A stretch of 64,000 bases of DNA from assembly GCA_904063045.1 (NCBI GenBank), contig CAJFCJ010000004.1, positions 2,411,713-2,475,712 on the forward strand. The letters run 5' to 3'. A program made the translations under genes and the position numbers. This document shows positions 37,625-51,453 of the stretch, one piece after another; position 1 is the stretch's first letter; each line of letters opens with the position of its first letter. The stretch comes from Dimorphilus gyrociliatus. Lineage: Eukaryota > Animalia > Annelida. The notes below the pieces were generated by a model, which did not search any database, was not told the DNA's origin, and saw only the letters and a program-made list of their open reading frames with translations.

Positions 37625-38100
37625 ATTGCAAACAATGCAAACAAGATGAAAGAGGATCTAAATCGGAAGGGAGAAGTCAATTGACTAAACAATTATTTTC
37701 GTATTAATTTCAGACTTACTGTCTTCTTTTAGTTGATTTTATTAACGAAATAATTAAGGAATTTGTTAGGCTTATGTATGGAATATTTTGCCTGTTAAAT
37801 TATAGATTTTACCAACCTACTCTGCCAACTAAACATATGTAACAATCTACGCAATAGCTTATTAATATTATTAATAAATAAACACTGAGTGCGTGCCAAA
37901 GTTCAATTTATCTTTAATGCCATCCAAGTCATTTTTACGTTTTAACCTACGCAACATATTTTCTAGACTAGCTACACAGCTGTAATATTCACGAACAACG
38001 CTAATGTCTCTTATTTTTTACATTTAGATAAATAAATCTTATACTTAGTATATAAATGTCGACTTTCTATAAATTTACTTTTATACTAAACTATGTAAGC

Positions 38101-40334
38101 ATGAAATTAATGACTTTTATATTCCTTATCCAACTGGTATCTTCCGAGAATATTGATCTCTTGGGAAAACCTGTAAAACAATCTGGTAAGAATAGAATAC
38201 TATTCGATGGGGTTTTGCACAAGGCCGAATTGGCTATTGATGGGGATGAGACTGATGGAGGGGAGTAAGTCTTACCATTAAAATATCTATTGATAATTAT
38301 AACTCTTTCTTAATCTCTCTTTCTTTTAATCCTTTATTTAAAGCTTTAAATCGTGCATGAATGCCGAACCGGATGGTGATTATAAATGGCTAATGATTGA
38401 TCTGGAAAGTGTATATAACATTAATAAAGTAAATTTAGTGCTAAGGGAATGTTGCTGTATGTCAAAAATAACTATATTATTTATTCATTATTATGTTAAT
38501 TGAAAAAGTAACTTTTTCTCTTCTCCTCTTCCTTTTCCAGTTGATCATTACAGAGAATTGTTTATTCGTTTATACACTAAACCTCCAGAAAAATGGTACG
38601 ACGGTGGAGATTTGTGCAAACATTTCAAAATTGAAAAAGATCCACCAAGAAAAATAAATATATCATGCGATAACCCCGTATCTGGCCGTTATGTTGCAAT
38701 ATCTATGAATTATAAACTTCCAATTTATAAGAACTTGCAGCTTTGCGAGGTTTGTTGAGAGAAAGATGTACAGACAACGAGAGCGAAAGAGAGAGAGTGG
38801 GAGAGAGAGAGAGAGAGAGAGAGAAAGAGGAAGAGAAATGGAAAGCTTGCATAAAAAAAATAATAACTTAATAAGGAGATAGTTTTTTGCGATATTTTTA
38901 GGTCTATATCGATGGAACTTTGACAGGCAACTCTGTAAAACAAGCCACGAACTACACACCCAAAATAGCCAGTACAAACTTTTACTATTAATTGCCTTAA
39001 TTTTTCTACTAGTTTTAAATTACACTTAATTGAAACAGGAACGACGGACCGTTTGTCAACCTCATCAACTTTGACTGTTACTCCCGTTCCAACGCCAACA
39101 AGCACAGAGAAGATTAAGTATAGTAAGAAAGCGGAAAAAGAATGCTCTAGCCAGGATTCTTGCGGATTAAGGTGTACCGATACAGTTGAACCATCGGGAT
39201 TAGAAGCCGTTCCTAACAGTTGGCCGTTTTTAGCGGCCATATTCCAAAGAACGCCTTATTTGGTGCGTCTAAAATAATTTTCCATCTCTTCTTCACCTTA
39301 GTCGTCTTTTGCGTCTTTGCTTTATCTTTAGAATATTTTGGGGTGAAAAGAGAGAGAGAGAGAGAGAGACAGATATATATATATATATATATCATGCATT
39401 AATAATATTTTTTTTCTCTTTCGTACTGTTACAGCGGTACATTTGTGCAGCAACGATTATTTCACATAAATGGTTAATTACATCAGCAAATTGCTTTGAG
39501 GGCGATCTAAAGTAAATTTTCTTTAAAAGGTATAAAACGAGTAGCTTTATATAATTTATTGATCGGTTTAGGAGTGAAAATTACATAGTCCTAGTTGGAG
39601 TGACAAACACTGAATTTGAAGAATTAAATTTTAACCAAAAGGAACACGAAATAAACCGATTTGTGTCCCAACCGGAATTTCCGGAAAAAACTGACAATGG
39701 TACTGTCCTAATTGAATTAAAGGAAGATCTTATGTGGAATCAACAAATACGTAGAATTTGTCTATCACCACAAAAACCCTCTAAGGCTGATAAATGTTTT
39801 CAAGTAGGTTGGGGTTCAAGGTTTCTTAACTTAAAAGGTTGTGATAATTAGATTTACAGCTTATCCTTGAATTTATACCTCTTCGACAATCATTCTTTTT
39901 GCAGAGGATATAAATAAACACCTGTTTAATTTGATGGAAATTGCTGTTAGTGAACACGATTGTTCCTCTAGTACAAATAATTCAACTAGATGCTTTCAAT
40001 CCGAAAAAGGCTTTTGCTACGTAAGTTTTATTATACTCTATAATCTATCTTTTTCTCATTTTCCTTCTCCTCTTCATCTTCCCCCCACCCCCTCCCCTTC
40101 TACTTAATCCACTAATAAATAACCGATATAATCCAAAGAAGGAAATAATGATTACAATTGATAAATTGATTGCAGTTTGATTATGGCGGACCAGTTGTTT
40201 GTAATAAAGGGGATAAATATACGCTTGTTGGTATAAGAGGATTAAGAACTGGTTGCGATTCAGCCTCTGAAATAGTAACAAACATACAGGAAAACGGTAT
40301 TTCTGAATGGATAGATAGCATTATAAATAAATAG
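38101..40334 (+). CDS. Secreted F-type lectin (fucolectin/F5-8C-like) domain + S/T/P linker + catalytically inactive trypsin-like domain, about 9 exons
   Basis: Signal peptide MKLMTFIFLIQLVSS. FTL motifs ELAIDG, WLMIDLESVY, RECC, GRYVAI, LQLCEVYI. Trypsin-fold motifs SWPFLAAI, ICAATIISHKWLITSANC, ICL, VGWG, DYGGPVVC. GT-AG junctions are in frame; one weak donor near 39838. Confidence 0.85.
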
Positions 40335-40680
40335 GCTTAATTAGTAATTAATAAATAAATTGGAATTTAAAACAGTATCCTATGAAGTATATAGTTAGAT
40401 GGATGTATTGTTTTCTGTCCTTGTTATGAATGTCTTCTTATTTGCTAGAAACAGGTTTTGAATAAAATTAAAAAGAAATGAGGTCAAATTGAGAAAAAAT
40501 ATATATATTTTATTAAAAAAACTATTCATATTAATGCCTGAAGGGAATATGTTAATTAGATTTATTCTAGAATAAGATATGGTTGAAGAGAAACTATTAT
40601 TTAAAAAGTGTTCAACTTTTTTTCTTGAATATCATCTTTATCACTTGCTATATATATTTATATATATATATTTAATTTCT

Positions 40681-41483
40681 TTAGGGTTTCGGGGTTGGTT
40701 TCGGGGTTGGTTTCGGGGTTGGTTTCGGGGTTGGCTTTGGTGTTGTTTTTACATTCTTGGCTTTAGCGGCTTTAGCCTTCTTCTTCTTTTGCGCTATCTT
40801 CTTCTTCTTTTCTGCTACCTTCTTCTTTTTAGCAGCTTCGTTCTTTTTCTTGGCTTCTGTCTTCTTTTTCTTGTTGGCTTTGCCACCTTTCTTACCAGGT
40901 CCTTTACCGTGTCCCTTTCCGGGTCCCTTTCCATGTCCCTTTCCGTGTCCCTTTCCGTGTCCCTTTCCGTGTCCCTTTCCGTGTCCGTGTTCAATTCCGG
41001 TTGTATTAAAGTCTGTAGAATTATGCAGATCTCCCCATTCGTCGATATCAGTATGATTTCCTACAGTGAAATTTCCATCCGCCCATTCTGTACCACTGTG
41101 TTCTCCGTCGAGATGTTTTTCAGTATCATCTGTCAGATGCCAGCCATCATCTCCCTATACAAAGAAATACTTATTCGCAATGATTGGCAAGAAGATAAGG
41201 ATTACACTGTTACTTTATTTATTCGTTTTGTTAAAAGAGAAATTTACTTTTTCTATAAAAGCTTTAACTAATCAAAACGGAATTAAAAGTTTAAAATAGA
41301 AAAAGTTGTTTTTTTAAAAAAACAAACAAAAACGAAAAAGATAAAGCAGCATAATTTATAATAGAAGAAGAAGAAGAAAAGAGAAAATTAAAATGGAATA
41401 TTTACCGAACCATGTTCAACAGTTGGAGAAATAAGGTTTTGTATCAGAAATACAGTTATAGATATAAAGATGAACGTCTTCAT
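40681..41483 (-). CDS. Secreted low-complexity block protein (183 aa): signal peptide, acidic N-glycosylated block, (GKGH/P)7, poly-Lys block, (TPKP)5; exons 41483-41406, 41154-40681
   Basis: Exon 1 MKTFIFISITVFLIQNLISPTVEHGS|GTAAAT. Acceptor TTTGTATAG|. Exon 2 is open for 157 codons to TAA at 40683-40681. Synonymous variation among repeat units supports coding. Absent from the ORF track because exon 2 has no start codon. Confidence 0.88.
40684..40742. repeat. 12-bp tandem repeat (GGTTTCGGGGTT)n encoding TPKP
   Basis: About 4-5 visible copies. Confidence 0.95.
40893..40990. repeat. 12-bp tandem repeat (GTGTCCCTTTCC)n encoding GKGH/GKGP
   Basis: About 7 visible copies with codon-level variants. 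Confidence 0.95.
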
Positions 41484-41591
41484 AATTAATACAAAATTAT
41501 AGTTAACGTTCCAAACACGATTGTTGAACTACTGCATTTAAAATGAATTATTGAAGTATTTTAAATGGTAAAAGGTAACAGGATGTAAAAT

Positions 41592-41627
41592 ATGCAAATG
41601 CGATAATTGATAACATTTTTGACGTCA
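41592..41627. promoter_or_regulatory. Octamer (ATGCAAAT, 41592-41599) and full CRE (TGACGTCA, 41620-41627) upstream of the secreted block-protein gene
   Basis: Exact motif matches 110-145 nt upstream of ATG 41483. Confidence 0.35.
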
Positions 41628-43627
41628 AACAATAAAAATATTGTTTCAATTGTAATAGTTAAAATCTATTTAGAGAAAATAGAAAGAAAACTGCGGGCAT
41701 CAAACTGTTACGCTTTTATTTAGACATGAAATATTCATATCCGATTTTATTAGTCATAATAATAATTTCAGAAATGTAAGCTTTATATCATAAACACACC
41801 TTTGGAAAAAATGTATTAATAGTTGTCGATGAATCATTCAAATAATTTATGTATTTCGGTGTATTTATAGTTTGATAAGCACTTCCATACGTGTAATATC
41901 ATTTATTATCATTAATCATACGATCGATTTTAATAGGTATTGCATAAATAGAGCTAATATAAACATGAATGTATATTATGCAAATTCTATAGCCTTTTTT
42001 TATAGATAAAAGTATATACTGTATTTATATGTTGTTTGTAAGAACATGACTATATTGAATTATTTAGAAATATACAGCTAATAGAATGTGATTTAACACA
42101 TTAATTTGAAAATTCACCAGATGTTGTCAATTAATTTGCAACTGGATAAATGCAATTGCTTCCTGTTGCTAAAGAGCTTATACGCTTTTGCTTACTCGGA
42201 AATTAACGGCTTATTTCACATTTCCTTTGATTCAACCCCTATCTTTTTGCCTCCCTCCTCCCTCTCTGCCTCTGTTTCTTTGTATTTCTGTCCATTTGTC
42301 TGTATAAATGAGCGTCTAGTCCCATCATCCCTCCCTATCTATCTTACTCGTTTATATTTCCCTCCTCTAGTCTTTCATCATTCCTAACGCTTATATTTTT
42401 CTCTCTTTTCATCAACTTTTAATTCGCCATTTATCAACTGTTCTTCAGTTATTTTCTACATAGAAGAAACAAATTCGCTGACTGACGTAGTTAGTATGAA
42501 AAATAAAGTTTTTATAATACAATTTTTGAATTTTCCTCTTTATAATGTAATTACCAATTATATTAATTGCTAAATAATTACCAATTGGTAACGATTACAT
42601 GGATAAAAGAGACAATAGAACTATCCATAGTTTTGTCTCTCTCTCTCCCTCTGTTTAACAAAATAAAAGTACATAAAAAAATGTTATAAATACTTTATTG
42701 TTTTTTGTTCTAAAAATGAGAAGAACGGAAATTAAAAGAGGAAAAGAGAAATTAAAAGAATATTAAGATGATTACCTTTCTTTATATAGATTTAATAGAT
42801 TGTTGAATATCTGAATAAAATTCTTATTTATTCCTCTTTTATTCAATTTTAACTAATCTTTTCCTCTTTTATTTCAAAACAATGACCTATTTATAGGTAA
42901 TTTTTAACGATTAACAAGTTTAGAATAATAATTAGGCAATAAATATTCAAGTTTCTTTATTCATCGTTTCCTTTTAGGTCTAATTCAATTAAAATTATAT
43001 ACTCTATACCTTTTCATCTATGTTTGAAGACTCAAAACCATAATTATTTCATCTCTCTTCTCCTCCTCCCACCCTCCCTCTCTTCTAGTTATTTGTAGGT
43101 AAAACTTTATCTAAGCTATGTAATTAGGTATTTTTCTCAAAGTATTAAATATTTATTAACTGTCACGAGTTATTAAACGCCTCTCTTATTTAATTATTCA
43201 ACATTTCATAACTTTTTTGTTAATATTACTAAAGAAAAAGCTACTGCTCTAAAAAATCTTAGTAATGCCCATTTTCTGTAATTCTTTCAAATTTAGAAGA
43301 GTTTCCGGGTAATTATTTCAAATAACGTTAATTTTAGGTGTATCCTCCATATAAAATATTGTGCTGTTATAGACATATATATATATAGGATATTTTCTCT
43401 CTTCTTCCCTCCCTCTCTCTCTCTTTCTGTTTCTTCTTCTAGACGAGATGAAATTATTGCCAATTTTACCAGCAAACGGTCTTCCTCCTACTAATCTTCT
43501 TTTAAACTCTTCTTTTCGACATACTAATATCATATAAAAAGGTTATTAGAATGATTATGTATGCGCTTTTGCTTAAATTTGCAAAGGATTTAAGAGAAAA
43601 GTGCAAAGGATATGAAGAAGACGAAAA

Positions 43628-43668
43628 AGAAGAAGAAGAAGAAGAAGAAGAAGAAGAGAGAGAGAGAA
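43628..43668. repeat. (GAA)n-(GA)n microsatellite
   Basis: Directly visible. Confidence 0.9.
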
Positions 43669-46600
43669 TAGAAAAAGGTTGTTTTATTTAGTTAAGCTGT
43701 GTTAGAAAGGAATAAAAGAAATACTTTTATTCTTAAACAAACAGTCTTAACCGAAAAAAAATAAATATTTTCTTTTTACCTATTTTCTCTCTTTATCTTA
43801 TTAATTACTTTGCTTAATGTAATAATAAACTAATTATTTTTTAGGCCTAAATTATCTTCTTTATCGTTTAAAGATTATAATATTAGCCATTATTCATTTA
43901 ATACTTAATCCCTTTTTGTGTTTTCTTTCTTGTTTTATTTTTAATTAAAAGATTAACTTTTTTTCTTTCTTTCGCCTTGGGAGTTTCCTCTTTGTCTCAT
44001 CTTCTTCGGCTAGTATTACTGCCATTACTACTGCTACTACTACCGCAGCAATCACTTCTACTTCTTCTCCTTATTCTTTTCCTTGTATTATAATCCCGTT
44101 GGAAAATATTTACATTTCATTTATTTCATTAGGAAAAAAAGTAATAATAGAGGAGAAAAATAGAGGAAATTCAGTTCAACTTTTAGTGATACGTTAATTA
44201 AAAATGAGTTGTCAAAAGAGCTAATGTCCTCTTTTGGGGACACGTCACATATTATTGCCAATAAAGGAAAACACCTGCTGAAAATATTTCCAAATAGTTA
44301 TAGAAACTTATATTTTAGAAAAAGTATGTCTATCGATTAGGAATTCTATATAAACTTTATCGGAAGAAGAGAAGTAAAAAACCGTTAAATTAAGACTTGT
44401 TAGCCTTTTTACGAATTCTAACAAGTGCTATCTCTTTAAATGTAATTTATTTTAGAACCACGTTGTTAATTATGTTTTGGAGACGATTCTGAAGACGACG
44501 AGAAGAAGAAGAAGAAGAAGAAGAAAAAGGACAAAAGAAATAGTTTTAGCTTTAACTTTGTCAGTTAAATAGGTTAATTGTGAAATAAATGATTTAAACT
44601 AGAATTTCACTTTAACGATTCATTAAACTACAATGAATAGGCAATAAGATGGCGAATTGTATGTAAAAAGTTGAGAGAAGATAGAGCGTACAGTATAGTT
44701 TATATGTTAGGCAGAGTAGTTGTAATTAATGTCGCAGGAATATAACTCAGTGGCAGCCAATGGTATTTTTTACATTGTTAAAAGAATACAACAGTCAACA
44801 TTTCACACGTGATGTGAAAATATCTAATTTTAAATGCCTAGCTATATTTGTTCCATAAACAATACCTTTTGAACTGTTTGCTTATCCTCTTACGTAATAT
44901 ATTTTACCCATATATAGCCTACAGTTTATCTTAGGATAGCTTTTCAATCAAAGTTTGTGACTATAGTCCATCTACAAGGCGATAATCCTTTAATATCAAC
45001 AAGATTTGGAGATTTTAAGTAGATCCTAGGCTAAAAATGGATATTAAAGCTTTAACAAGCACTATACCGTCTTACCTGTCGAATGGTCTAAATCTGTCTT
45101 AATTAGATGGAATGTAACAAATACATATATTTATATATATATATAAATAGCATACACAGTACATAAATATTATATACAGAATATATATAGATCAGTTTAT
45201 AAATAAAATGGAAATAGGTACATATTAGCATGTACTGTGTCTAATGTATATTTATCTAATATCTATAGTATATTATATTCATACTGTGATGAAATCAATA
45301 GAGAAAGAAATAACAAACAAATGATTTCTAAGCTCTTTTCTCCCAATTTCGTTCGTAGAGCATATGGTAATAGAAACAGAAAAGAGGAATTGTGTAAAAT
45401 GATATTAATCTTCTAAAAATATTGAGTTCTTCTTATATCAGAGACATCAATGAAATAAGATATCTTACTGTCATACAAGATTCGTTCTCTTTATTTATTT
45501 TATTCCCTATTACTTTTTATTACACATCGAAATTGTCTATTGATTTTACTGAATGAATTTTTATACTTGTTTTCTTAGATAGGATGGATTTTACTTGGTA
45601 AAAGTCTACCATCAGACATTTTCTTTTTCCTATTCCATTCGAAAAGGAAGATAGAAATGAAGATGAAAAAAGAAACATTATTTTCTATTTCTTCCCTTAT
45701 TTCCCACAAAAATAACTTTGGAAATTTTATTAATTATTTCAATTTAATTTTAGGTAACAAAATCCTTTTCCTCTTTGCCTTCCTCACTTCTCTTCTCTGT
45801 TCCTCTGTCTCTATCTATCTGTATTTTCTCTCTCTCTCTCTGTCTGTACTTTCCTACATTCTCTATTATGATAAGAAATTTGAGCCGACAGAAATTACTG
45901 TCAATGTGAGACAAATCTATATGAATATATACATTATACATATAGATATATACTAATATATATAGTATGTATTTATTTAAATGTAGCAGTGAATGAATGA
46001 TAAACGAATTGTCTTAGTTTTATAAATGTAAATGCTTTCTTCTCTTCGCTTCCCGTTGAGGAGGTTTTTTCGCCAAGAAACTTGTCTAAACTTTGAAAGG
46101 TTTCTCAGTGACCTTTCCGTACTTCACTGCACATGTACGATTCCATCTTATTTCTAATTCTTAATGCTAGAAAACTATCTTATTTCTTGCCTTTCAAAAA
46201 GGAATAATTTTTATTAAAGGAAAAGAAATATAAACTGAGAAATGAAAATCTTCCTCCCCTTCTTGTCTTGCTTTGCCTACTCGCTTCATTCATCCATTGT
46301 TGTTTATATAGAAAGTTAATGTTAAGAGAAGAAAAGAAATGAGATAATTTAACAATAATTGTATTGTTATAATTATTCAAATAAACTAATTTAATTATCT
46401 TATAATTTTTTTCTATTCCAAGCAGACGAATAATTTAGTCATTTACCAGTTTAATACTACTTATTGGCAGAGTAAAACCCCTTAGTTTATCTCCATACAA
46501 GTCAATCAAATGTAACCTTTTTGACAGGAAGAAGAGTGTGATCAGCATTGTTAAAAGTAGAAGGAATTTCCAATTATTGCCCAGAATGATTTCTAGATGA

Positions 46601-46703
46601 ATTAGAAGAGAGAGAGAGAAAAAATAAAGAATTCTTTTAAAGGTCAAACGATAAAATCATCTAAACTAAATAGAACAAAGATGATAATGTAATATTTTCA
46701 GTG

Positions 46704-48332
46704 TTACTCTTTCAACGAATTGATTGCGTATTCTCTAATAGATTTGCGTTGAACTTTGTTCGTATAGGTTTTATGAAGCTCATCAATAAAAACAACATTA
46801 TCAATATTGCATGCATAACCCAAAGCTGGAAAACTTGGTATGTTTTCACTGCAATACTGCAAAATGTTCTCTTTGAGAATCTCTTTGTTGTTGTCTAAAT
46901 AATTCTCCTTTAATTGAACAACAGCGCATAAACTCTCCCCCAAACGGTCGTCTGGTATTCCTACGACGATAACGTCTTTGATGCATTCAAAATGTATAAT
47001 TTTCTCTTCTAGTTCCAATGGAAAAAATTTTACGCTGCCGACATTTATCTCATCGCAACGCCTTCCCGTCACTCTTGCCGAACCATCCTTTTCTATTACA
47101 CCAAAATCTCCGGTATTATGCCATCCATTCAGTGGCACTACTTTACGCGTTGCCGACGGGTTGCCTCGATATTCTTTAAGGCATCCTCGATTTTTGACCC
47201 AAATATGACCTGTCTCTCCCCTTTCAACAACCTCTCCCATATCGTTTCTGATTGTAATCTGGCTGAAAGCTGGTAATTTCATTATAGGCTTAAGATTGTT
47301 TTTCATGAAAATTCGAAAGAACATTGCCCCAAATTCGACAGCTCCGTATACATCGATAAGTATAACATTTGGAAGTATGTCGAACAATCTAGATAAGAAG
47401 GTATTATTTAGAACTTGTCCTCCTGTTAGTATAAATTTTAACGTTCCATCCAACTCTTTTAACTCTTCTTTATGATTAAGTGAATCACAAAGTAAATAGC
47501 CCAAGAAGAAAGCCATTGGACATTTTTCCAATTTCAATACCTTTAAAGATTTTTTGCAGTTGGCTGTTTCTTGTGCGGTAAATTTGGAGAAAATTGATTT
47601 TCTACCTGTAACTATCGATGTTATTATAAATCCAAAACCACCTGTATAAGACATTTGCCGATCGACAAAAGAAGTATTCTGAAAGCTGTCATTCTCTATT
47701 ACTTGACATATATACGACCATTGACTATGCTGAACTAATTTGGGCATGCCAGTCGTTCCGGATGTAAGAAGAACTATCAAATCATTTTCCGAATTAACTT
47801 TGGGTAAATTAATAGTGTCATCATTGTTTTCTTTGATTAAATCATTATAGAGAAGGAGTTTTTTTGCGGGTATATAATCAAATTTTTTTGCTTCTCCTAT
47901 TAAAACAACAATGGGAATTTCCTCGATACTACTTGAAGGGATTTCCAACAAGTAGTTTTCCTCAATAACAAGAGCATCCGGTTTAATATGAGATAGTATA
48001 CCTTCCAGTTGAATTTTATTCGAGACTAATACTGTATTTAGTCCGAGTCTTTGTAAACCCATGAAAGAAATTGGAAATTCTCGACAAGTTGGTACTAAAA
48101 GTAAGACAAGTTCGGATTTCTTTACGCTTCTTAGAAAGTTCTTGGCAAAATTTCTTGACGACTTACTCCATTCAGAGAAGGAGAGGCTCGATCTATTTAT
48201 ATTTCCGTCGTAGAAAACTATCGCTTCATCGTCGTCTTTATTTTCATTCTCCCTTTCATCCAGAAACTGATTTAAACTTTTAAAGCATTCAACAAAATTT
48301 TCCTTAACTGCCCCGCATAAGTAGGAAGACAT
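46704..48332 (-). CDS. Acyl-CoA synthetase / AMP-binding enzyme (ANL superfamily, ACSF2/4CL-like), single coding exon (about 542 aa)
   Basis: LLTSGTTGMPK AMP-binding loop, YGAVE, GWHNTGDFG, GRRCDEINVGSVKFFPLELE, VGIPDDRLGE and terminal NKVQR Lys. The ORF-track start is GTG; ATG is at 48332. Confidence 0.93.
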   Translation of the reverse strand: MSSYLCGAVKENFVECFKSLNQFLDERENENKDDDEAIVFYDGNINRSSLSFSEWSKSSRNFAKNFLRSVKKSELVLLLVPTCREFPISFMGLQRLGLNTVLVSNKIQLEGILSHIKPDALVIEENYLLEIPSSSIEEIPIVVLIGEAKKFDYIPAKKLLLYNDLIKENNDDTINLPKVNSENDLIVLLTSGTTGMPKLVQHSQWSYICQVIENDSFQNTSFVDRQMSYTGGFGFIITSIVTGRKSIFSKFTAQETANCKKSLKVLKLEKCPMAFFLGYLLCDSLNHKEELKELDGTLKFILTGGQVLNNTFLSRLFDILPNVILIDVYGAVEFGAMFFRIFMKNNLKPIMKLPAFSQITIRNDMGEVVERGETGHIWVKNRGCLKEYRGNPSATRKVVPLNGWHNTGDFGVIEKDGSARVTGRRCDEINVGSVKFFPLELEEKIIHFECIKDVIVVGIPDDRLGESLCAVVQLKENYLDNNKEILKENILQYCSENIPSFPALGYACNIDNVVFIDELHKTYTNKVQRKSIREYAINSLKE

Positions 48333-48998
48333 GATCACTCTTTTGTTGATACCTATGGATATATCTAAAACGAGTGAAGTAGCCCACGTTCAAACGAATT
48401 TATCTCTGGTGAAAATAACATTTATATCAGCCTTGACCTTAATTCACTTTTTGTCGATATGGCCAATCGTATTCAGTAAATATCTAAAAGACTACTTGTA
48501 TAAAATTTTTTTACAATCTGTCTATCTATTCAATAAAAATTTATCATTGATAATTTTTGTTGATTAAAATAGAAAGAAATAAAAGAATCGTACGATCCTC
48601 TTTGATTTTTAAAAAATAAAACAATTCTTTCTATTTTATCATTTCTATTGAAAATTAGAAAATGGGATTTTGTAAGAGACATTTATTGCTTTTTATAACA
48701 TTTTTTTTGTCAATATTTAATGTAGATAAAAATACTTGAGACAGTTTTTCTTCTTTTTTTTTTATCATAGTCGCCTTTTGGCTATGATTCTAAAATTGGA
48801 ATAAACTAGAGTACCATTTTCTTTTTTAGATGACTGCGTAAATGCAGTAGGAATATAGTTAAAAGATGTGCATTTAATAATACGATTCAACTATGCCGTG
48901 TATTTATGGAATTATGTAAACGAAACCTTGACATTGGAGTTTTATAGTTGTGCTTATTATATTTAAACAGTATATACTATAGTCATTGGTATTTTTAG

Positions 48999-51453
48999 TC
49001 AATCGAATAGGGGATCTGGAGGTGGGGGTGTCACGTTAGCAGTACATTCGGGAGCCTCTAGACTATATAAATCAAGCGTCATTAATCTCACTTGTATTTC
49101 ATTAAGAATTAATTGGTGCAATTCTTCTCTTCCTTCGTCATCGACGATAATATTTTCTCTCCTTATTATACTCTCTAAACCATAGAACCACGCCTTACAT
49201 ATTTGATCATTTCTAAAGTGCATTACAAGTTCGATATAGCTACATTTCGCCTCTGCTGATCGGATCTTTATGGTGAAACTTTCCGATTTGAAGTTATTTA
49301 CTTGCGAAATATCTTTCAAGTCAACTGTAAAACGAACGTAAAATGAATAAACATTATATATACAATATATATACAATAATTATTTAATATTGAGTACATT
49401 ATAGATTAATCAATGATTAATAAAACTTACTACGAGGGGGTGTTTTATCACTGTTCGACGAACGGGGAGACTTTAAATGACTGATAACCTTTATAAGATA
49501 CTGGCCGTTGTTTGACAATATCCAATGGCTTTTAGAATCTTTTATCCCTTAATTAGGCAAAGAAATAATAGAATATTGTTTAATTAGTTAATTATTTAAT
49601 TAATTAATAAAATTTCTAGTTACCACTTAATTTCATATGACCAATACCATAATGCTTTTGCATTATCCTCACTCTGCGAGATTGAATAACATCTCCGCAA
49701 TAGCTCTCTAGCTTAGCGTTCAATTCTCTAAGTTTATAGAGGAAATTATTGAATTATAATTAGTAGACTTAATTAGTATTCAAACAAAAAATTACAGAAA
49801 ATTTTTGCTATCTCTTAGATTCTTATCTTTATCAATCGCCTCTCTTTTGTTATTATCATAGATTTCGGAGAAGGAAGCCTGTTGAAGATTTTCGTTTAAG
49901 CCATCAAAGTTAAAGATATCGGTTTTTTGTAAATTTGGAAGAACTTGATATAAAATAACGAATGACGCCGCTAGTTGAGCGTCTTTTTCGCTTTTTCCCA
50001 ACATTTCCGAGAAAGTTTTCGGAAAAAGATTTGCAGCTGAACAGAACAATTCTTCAAAAGCAAATTCATTGAATAGAAAGGTTAACGGTGGAAGAGAGTC
50101 GATAGAGTACGAAAGAGCATCCTCTACTTATTTAAGAAATGAAATAATAATTATTATTATCATTAATTAAGAATTCGTATGCAAATTAAATATGCAAATA
50201 TTTACTGTTCTGGTCTAATTTAAGGATCTTGAGAAGGTTTGTAACCAAACATTGGCTGACTTTAATAAATGAATACGTACTATTGATACAACTGAAAAAG
50301 AAATTCTTATCCTTTTCGTATAGATAATCTAAGCATCTTATAGTTAATTTTCCGTAGGAAAATGAAAAATCATCAATTGGATTATTCGGATTCTTTAAAA
50401 GAGAAATTAAAAAGATATTGATAGATAATTAAAAAGAAACAAGAACAATTCAAACCCTAAATCCATTCTGTTCAAGTTTATCTTTTAAACAACTATTTGA
50501 ATAGGAGGAAGTTATTTTCTTGACAAATTTATCGACTGTTTGTAAATCTTCCTGTACAAATGAAGAGAAAAGTAAATTTATTTTTTTAGTTTGGTTATTG
50601 ATTTTTTTGCCCCCGTCTACTACAAACAACGTTTTATTTTCTATATAAACATCTTTCGTGTTTGTTTTCTTTTTATTATTTTATTTTTTTTAGCTCAATG
50701 AATCGGCTTTTAAAAGTTGTAATTAATTTATTTCTTTGCTTTATTGTTGATCAATGGCAATGTATTGATTGGTGGAAAAATGTTAAATAAACCACAAATA
50801 GGCTTATTTAATTTTGACTTGAACGTGAAAAATTGTCTATAAGACATATGTACAGTCTAAAAATATTAGTATACAGTATATACTGTATATATAGACTGAT
50901 ATTTAAAACTAACTGTTACGGTGTGCGTTAGTTAATTGATTCTAGTAAAAGATGATATCTTTGCAACATGATTTGTAAAGAGAGGGAGGCAGGATTTCAA
51001 TTCCTTTATTCATTAATCAGAATAAATATAGGATACTGTTGTTTATATACAGTATTTTTACATTTTATTAACCTGATTCTCCTTATTCATTGGTGATAGA
51101 CTATGTAATCCTACCATAGCTTTTACGGCAACAATTTGTAGAGATTTTAACTGATTCATAATCTGAAACAGTAACGATGGCGTATTCATTGCGTCTCTTT
51201 CCAAATCTTTGATTGTACATTTAAAGAGCGGACACTCCAAAAAGATATCTCGAAGTTCGAACTTTAATTAAAAAGAAAGAATTAACTTGAACAGACGTTT
51301 TTATAAATGAACGAATATATAGATAAAAGAAAAGAAAAAAGAAAGATAAAAGACAGAAATCTATACTCAACCAGTAAGTCATTGTCCAGAAAATTTTCTG
51401 AAATATGACCGTTTAGTTTCTTCAACGCTTCTAGCTTTGTTCTAAGGTTTTCG
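48999..51453 (-). CDS. ELMO: Divergent ELMO/CED-12 homolog (ELMO domain + PH + C-terminal Pro-rich), multi-exon; 5' exons probably extend to about 52.3 kb
   Basis: Exons give KLEALKKL, NQLKSLQI, GFR|NPNNPIDDF..LDYL, FEELFCSAANLFPKTF and CKAWFYGLESII..ELHQLILNEIQVRL..PPPPDP, collinear with ELMO1 motifs recalled from memory. Start not resolved. Confidence 0.75.

Follow-up and report, generated by a model that had tools for sequence, protein, structure and literature searches.

The minus strand of the Dimorphilus gyrociliatus window (the whole stretch of 64,000 nucleotides that was analysed, to which all coordinates refer) carries a two-exon reading frame that is probably a real gene for a secreted protein. 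The explanation that we prefer, and hold as a serious possibility short of a probable one, is a real, unannotated, lineage-restricted gene whose product would be a small secreted glycoprotein acting as an extracellular polyelectrolyte. The locus combines an open reading frame of splice-compatible structure with a block-wise composition and signatures of selection on the reading frame, and it is a credible unannotated orphan gene. Its features, as read from the minus strand, and the plus-strand frame that overlaps them are the following.

41406..41483, minus strand: exon 1, 26 codons, with a signal-peptide-like leader; the start is the first in-frame ATG after a stop
41155..41405, minus strand: intron, 251 nt, phase 0, consisting of GTAAAT, a pyrimidine tract and a closing TAG, with a GC content of 0.22
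41154..40684, minus strand: exon 2, 157 codons
40987..41154, minus strand: acidic block, residues 1-56 of exon 2
40891..40986, minus strand: GHGK array of eight units, two of which are GPGK, with a period of 12 nt and mostly synonymous differences between units
40747..40890, minus strand: Lys-rich region with five Lys clusters (K3-4 runs) in strict 7-residue register, period 21/42 nt
40684..40746, minus strand: tail consisting of T and five TPKP units, period 12 nt
40681..40683, minus strand: stop codon TAA
40561..40566, minus strand: candidate polyadenylation signal AATAAA, about 115 nt past the stop, recognised by reading the letters only
40579..41271, plus strand: antisense ORF of 230 aa, Leu/Phe-rich and codon-aligned with exon 2, which appears in the ORF list in place of the exon

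A first inspection of the DNA, made from its letters and referred to here as the sequence-only reading, had proposed a two-exon gene on the minus strand, and reading that strand and translating both pieces bore this out: exon 1 joins exon 2 in phase 0 at a predicted splice. The donor is G/GTAAAT, with the intron starting at 41405 of the minus strand, and the acceptor reads ...TTTCTTTGTATAG/G, with its AG at 41156-41155. The acceptor TAG closes the exon-2 frame directly upstream, so that exon 2 can be read only by phase-0 splicing. The gene model is self-consistent, comprising an ATG, a hydrophobic leader, a phase-0 GT donor, an AG acceptor and one terminal stop. The length of the intron counts against our preferred explanation, since the median intron of D. 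gyrociliatus is 66 nt (PMC7854359) and the 251 nt predicted here are about four times that value.

Exon 2 could also belong with a first exon other than the one proposed, in a gene model that is different or larger; that exon would lie upstream, somewhere in the 5.2 kb before the next gene, and the signal-peptide-like exon 1 would be a coincidence. Those 5.2 kb are free of annotated genes and yet contain conserved blocks, which speaks for such an exon. However, of the ORFs that begin with ATG and carry a phase-0 GT donor, exon 1 lies closest to exon 2, at 251 nt upstream, its phase fits an acceptor that permits no other reading, and the cluster of N-glycosylation sequons encoded by exon 2 (see below) is compatible with a secretory leader. 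We consider an alternative first exon improbable.

The interval itself (41484-46703, about 5.2 kb between the gene and an acyl-CoA-synthetase-like gene) has no ORF of at least 100 aa, which is unusual for so compact a genome; positions 43614-43657 are taken up by a (GAA)n microsatellite. Four blocks downstream of the acyl-CoA-synthetase-like (ACS-like) gene, at 45374-45560, 45688-45776, 46040-46186 and 46400-46662, are 80-86% identical at the DNA level to contigs of a related species (L001 and L003), compared with only 56-57% identity for the ACS protein. None of the three plus-strand frames is open throughout the blocks, the minus-strand ORFs listed there have only 66 and 70 aa, tblastx matches occur in all frames, and no Rfam family was found. 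Judging from these sequence comparisons, the blocks may represent conserved non-coding elements, a non-coding RNA or a conserved 3'UTR.

The absence of the gene from the mechanically generated ORF list, which the sequence-only reading had pointed out, is explained by the fact that exon 2 contains no in-frame ATG, GTG or TTG and is omitted from the list for this reason. The 230-aa plus-strand ORF listed instead was rejected as a real gene. It is a codon-aligned antisense shadow of exon 2, kept open by the absence of TTA, CTA and TCA codons from the sense frame, and it is also argued against by variation among the repeats that is synonymous only on the minus strand.

This variation is one of the signatures of selection on the reading frame. 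Across the GHGK and TPKP units, 9 of the 11 differences from the unit consensus fall at third codon positions (P=0.0014 if the three positions are taken as equal); each of the nine is synonymous, and the remaining two are changes from His to Pro. Read on the antisense frame, the same nine would be first-position changes. Within the tail, the first TPKP unit is distinguished from the others by three third-codon-position differences, every one of them synonymous. The array periods returned by Tandem Repeats Finder (12, 21/42 and 12 nt) are all multiples of 3. Lysine is encoded by AAG in 64% of cases, versus 29% in five neighbouring genes of the window, and as a result of this preference no A-run in exon 2 exceeds 5, whereas the codon usage of the neighbours would lead one to expect a longest run of 13. 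Ribosomes are known to stall on poly(A) stretches within ORFs (PMC7295572). Duplication gave rise to the units, which means that the AAG bias is not fully independent of the repeat statistics, and (AAG)n slippage could mimic selection in the AAG and A-run signature. The GC content is 0.46 in exon 2 versus 0.22 in the intron, with the step lying at the predicted splice sites.

The same repeats invite another interpretation, namely that the frame is young and repeat-born or non-functional, generated by micro- or minisatellite expansion next to a chance ATG and hydrophobic stretch, and perhaps transcribed but yielding no protein under selection for a function. Every part of the protein is indeed a short tandem repeat, the searches revealed no homologue, and the proteome deposited for the genome lacks the gene; moreover, hydrophobic ORF starts occur by chance in AT-rich DNA, and the antisense frame is open too. 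Such an origin would have to be reconciled, however, with differences between units that lie at third positions and are synonymous, with periods that are without exception multiples of 3, with an acidic block of 56 codons that is open and only weakly repetitive and in which every Asn belongs to a sequon, with a sharp GC step placed exactly at the predicted splice sites, and with the presence of part of the locus in RNA-labelled sequencing runs. We regard a repeat-born or non-functional frame as unlikely, and return to the real, secreted product that we prefer.

The leader starts with Met-Lys, continues with an 11-residue hydrophobic core (residues 4-14, Kyte-Doolittle value 2.99) and ends in a polar stretch; it contains one Lys, and small residues at positions -1/-3 permit cleavage after residue 21 or 27. 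The product has no C-terminal hydrophobic tail and no second hydrophobic segment. The sequence-only reading had called a signal peptide, and core hydrophobicity and cleavage-site residues support an N-terminus that is signal-peptide-like. Hydrophobic ORF starts are common by chance in the AT-rich DNA of the window, as seen from other ORFs there; this counts against our preferred explanation and makes the sequon cluster the better, though indirect, argument for passage through the endoplasmic reticulum (ER). All four Asn residues of the acidic block lie within N-x-S/T sequons (NFT, NHT, NST and NTT), versus none of the three in the Lys-rich part, and at least four sequons were reached by only 0.03% of shuffles of the acidic block (P=0.0003). 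The placement of every acidic-block Asn in a sequon fits exposure to the ER lumen. On these grounds, the product would be secreted and N-glycosylated.

A second gene encoding a signal peptide lies next to the locus. It is a convergent multi-exon gene (38056-40334, plus strand), the product of which comprises the signal peptide, an F5/8-type-C (discoidin-like) domain and a trypsin-like domain. Alignment of the latter shows Asn in place of the catalytic His (TSANCF) and Tyr in place of the catalytic Ser (FDYGGP), so that the protein is probably an inactive serine-protease homologue. We considered whether exon 1 is a copy of the neighbour's signal-peptide exon and rejected the idea, the DNA score being within the range of shuffled sequences and the peptide alignment having P=0.09.

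The residue and motif counts given in the sequence-only reading were all reproduced by script. The acidic block (residues 1-56 of exon 2) contains 15 Asp/Glu, 1 Lys, 3 Trp and 6 His, and its last two units of about 17 aa (EW.D..N.T..N.T.I) form a weak internal duplication (shuffle P=0.03). The remaining 101 aa (residues 57-157) contain 38 Lys and 3 Glu. With the repeat arrays and the acidic-block duplication taken together, the whole protein is a modular repeat built from four kinds of short tandem repeat. The reported absence of Cys and Tyr was confirmed by residue count and extends to Arg, so that the whole product has none of the three, and Met occurs at the start only. The protein is about 17 kDa in size; the full product has 183 aa and its mature form about 160 residues. 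Its TPKP tail is, from sequence, a candidate stretch for mucin-type O-glycosylation.

Opposite charges, likewise proposed from the letters, are sharply separated along the chain. Computed for pH 8.1, the blocks carry -13.9 (acidic block), +9.1 (GHGK array), +20.9 (Lys heptads) and +5 (TPKP tail), which sets about +35, from Lys only, in the C-terminal two thirds against about -14 in the acidic block. The sequence charge decoration is -6.1 versus +8.2 +/- 1.0 in 2000 shuffles, none of which was so low. The chain loses net charge with rising pH, from a computed value of about +32 at pH 5.5 to +21 at pH 8.1, owing to 12 His residues that are divided equally between the acidic block and the GHGK array next to it. 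AlphaFold2, run without an alignment, gave a mean pLDDT of 59, and both points count against our preferred explanation. The model has one long helix in the Lys-rich region (residues 96-133, pLDDT 73-86) and, tentatively, a hairpin spanning residues 30-50; the remainder, which is most of the protein, is predicted to be disordered.

A composition of this kind also recalls the C-terminal tails of linker histone H1 and sperm nuclear basic proteins, and the product might be an intracellular, nucleic-acid-binding basic protein (linker-histone-tail-like or protamine-like) with a mis-read signal peptide. Shared with these proteins are the richness in Lys, Ala, Pro and Thr, the T-P-K motifs and an expected binding to polyanions, and PDB matches to the basic tails of ribosomal proteins point the same way. 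Those matches are, however, of low complexity only, with E-values no better than 6e-4, and a Pfam scan of exon 2 found no linker-histone or other domain. Unlike H1 and the protamines, the product combines a signal-peptide-like leader, in which one Lys precedes the hydrophobic core, with an N-glycosylation cluster that takes in every Asn of the acidic block, and it has neither a winged-helix domain nor Arg. The sequence-only reading had named a clear match to a known intracellular H1- or protamine-like protein as evidence against its proposal, and none was found in Pfam or the PDB. We judge an intracellular basic protein to be highly improbable.

Relatives of the preferred secreted product were sought in several collections. 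No protein of 86-275 aa among 5.8 billion clusters has a word in common with the acidic block, and phmmer of the block against 1.84 billion representatives returned one spurious repeat protein only. A sequence search with the whole of exon 2 gave a single match, spurious and of low complexity; Pfam gave 0 families at E<=0.1 for exon 2; and PDB sequences yielded only the low-complexity ribosomal tails mentioned above. The ESM Atlas contained no relative, nor did JGI metagenome loci and contigs, and the spliced junction, searched as a DNA pattern, was absent from JGI contigs as well. An Rfam scan (ending at 41297) found no non-coding RNA family, a search with positions 41298-41337 masked found no paralogue within the 64-kb window, and exact look-ups of the ORFs in and around the locus found none on record in other samples. 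In a full-text literature search for four-letter GHGK-type motifs, no described repeat of such a kind was encountered. The statement of the sequence-only reading that it recognised no family holds across the protein databases, Pfam, the PDB and the ESM Atlas. That these searches revealed neither an orthologue nor a paralogue counts against our preferred explanation.

Relatives of the ACS-like neighbour were found on Logan contigs from another species (L001-L006), on which the order of ELMO and ACS-like gene is kept, and all of these contigs end about 2.1 kb past the ACS gene. The gene studied here sits 5.2 kb past the ACS-like gene in the window, outside their coverage. On the most economical reading, the gene is real and lineage-restricted, and either young or fast-evolving.

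The ACS-like gene itself is a single-exon gene of the AMP-binding type (46704-48338, minus strand). The closest named relative of its protein is an ACSF2-like protein of Nematostella (26% identity), and relatives at 56-57% identity occur only on Logan contigs, which by sequence suggests a fast-evolving paralogue restricted to the lineage. Between the window (46704-49376, minus strand) and contigs L001 (1617-4329) and L002 of the related species, the ACS-like gene and the last exon of ELMO agree in order and orientation.

Part of the locus was detected in RNA-labelled sequencing runs. Between 13 and 47% of the words sampled from a 961-nt stretch of the locus occur in three such runs, which belong to two studies: a coral metatranscriptome, in which the animal can only be a minor member, contains 0.47 of the words, and two invertebrate metatranscriptomes contain 0.19 and 0.13. 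A share near 0.47 is the value expected from exon 2 alone, but it is not proof of it. Further runs of unspecified kind also contain part of the locus. The NCBI proteome of this genome itself lacks the gene, in that phmmer of the acidic block did not return the gene's own protein; as the ACS-like neighbour is represented in NCBI and UniRef and this protein is not, the gene is missing from the deposited annotation. That annotation comprises 14,203 genes and was built from transcriptomes and ab initio models (PMC7854359), and absence from a transcriptome-supported annotation (PMC7854359) counts against our preferred explanation. The window as a whole is AT-rich and compact.

If the product is secreted, it would act outside the cell as a polyelectrolyte. 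This mechanism is possible but more doubtful than the existence of the gene. The Lys-only C-terminal two thirds would bind polyanions, for example glycans of an acidic or sulfated kind in mucus, on surfaces or on microbes, and the N-glycosylated acidic block would compensate the neighbouring cationic block, either within a chain or between chains. Such charge compensation could lead to dense, coacervate-like packing in secretory granules. The 12 His residues would render the compensation dependent on pH or metal ions, tuned between the pH of the granule and that of seawater. A role in mucus, adhesion or cocoon formation may be envisaged. The sequence-only reading had suggested a self-coacervating, metal-responsive adhesive, mucus or cuticle protein, or else an antimicrobial precursor masked by its anionic block; its account of the structure is supported, and the functions that it named are possibilities. 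The lack of Tyr and Cys for curing, together with a size that is small for a structural polymer, counts against a cross-linked adhesive.

Annelid adhesives offer an analogy. In sandcastle-worm cement, Gly, Lys and His abound in the cationic partners. The cement of this worm (Phragmatopoma californica) consists of Lys-rich polycations and polyphosphoserine polyanions that are thought to coacervate in granules and to set in seawater (PMC5633886). Annelid origin, low complexity and oppositely charged blocks are common to both systems, secretion being a prediction in the present case, and the likeness is one of analogy, not homology. Here, however, both charges reside on one 17-kDa chain, the anionic part consists of Asp/Glu and N-glycan sites rather than phosphoserine, and the protein has no Tyr for conversion to DOPA and no Cys. 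No similarity to the P. californica cement proteins emerged from the database searches, as far as those proteins are represented there.

Two further groups of proteins resemble individual modules. His/Gly-rich stretches, as in kininogen domain 5, histidine-rich glycoprotein and the jaw proteins of Nereis and Glycera, bind metals or heparin. The regular Gly-His spacing of the GHGK array is shared with them and could likewise coordinate Zn or Cu and alter its charge around neutral pH; in contrast to them, the array has only eight copies, is half Lys and is accompanied by no cystatin or other domain (Pfam, PDB). With mucin-type Pro/Thr repeats, for example those of insect glue proteins, the product has in common a tail of Pro-flanked Thr in tandem units, synonymous variation and the format of a small repeat protein. 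It differs from mucins, which have a long Pro/Thr/Ser repeat domain and usually Cys-rich ends, in that the tail has only five units (20 aa, or 21 with the leading T) with a Lys in each, there is no Cys and the protein is far smaller.

The order of the charges would also suit a role in defence. In the precursor of a host-defence peptide, an anionic, glycosylated block would keep a polycationic C-terminal effector inactive until its release by proteolysis, as has been proposed for bipartite antimicrobial peptide precursors of Hydra. The Hydra precursors share this layout of two oppositely charged parts, are confined to particular taxa and reach very high expression (PMC10945409). Being orphan secreted proteins of bipartite charge, they also set a precedent for the explanation that we prefer. 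The product resembles Hydra arminin and periculin in its signal-peptide-like start, in an anionic part followed by a cationic one (here -14 and +35) and in its restricted distribution; it is an orphan, and the RNA-labelled runs indicate that it is probably abundantly transcribed. On the other hand, it has no Cys pattern and no Arg, and no canonical dibasic or furin-type site, nor any other evident processing site, marks the block boundary. Its cationic part, 101 aa in length, is far longer than in the Hydra peptides and non-amphipathic, being nearly devoid of hydrophobic residues, which makes amphipathic attack on membranes unlikely. Unlike the clustered Hydra families, moreover, the gene is single-copy within the window, with no tandem paralogue family in these 64 kb, and protein database searches revealed no sequence similarity to arminin or periculin. 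We rate a host-defence precursor as rather unlikely, and the extracellular polyelectrolyte remains the explanation that we prefer.

A more specific and decidedly speculative form of that explanation, which we put forward as a long shot, is a single-chain, self-compensating polyampholyte free of DOPA and Cys, in which an acidic glyco-block and a His-gated polycation would condense in granules and switch upon release into seawater. In this meiofaunal annelid it would serve as a glue, a mucus organiser or a granule packer, and its gene, consisting entirely of four tandem-repeat modules placed after a signal peptide, would be of recent assembly.

For an invertebrate genome to encode an orphan secreted protein of low complexity is unsurprising in itself, and on present evidence the protein does not constitute a new kind of system. 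If expressed and secreted, however, the protein would be a very small natural case in which both charge partners of coacervation are located on one chain, and its histidine switch, operating without DOPA or disulfide chemistry, would provide a simple template for biomaterials. Under the same condition, the gene would exemplify the way in which repeats, by expanding, give rise to a new gene for a secreted protein. For the D. gyrociliatus genome, the locus shows that genes escape the current annotation when their second exons are masked as repeats and lack a start codon.
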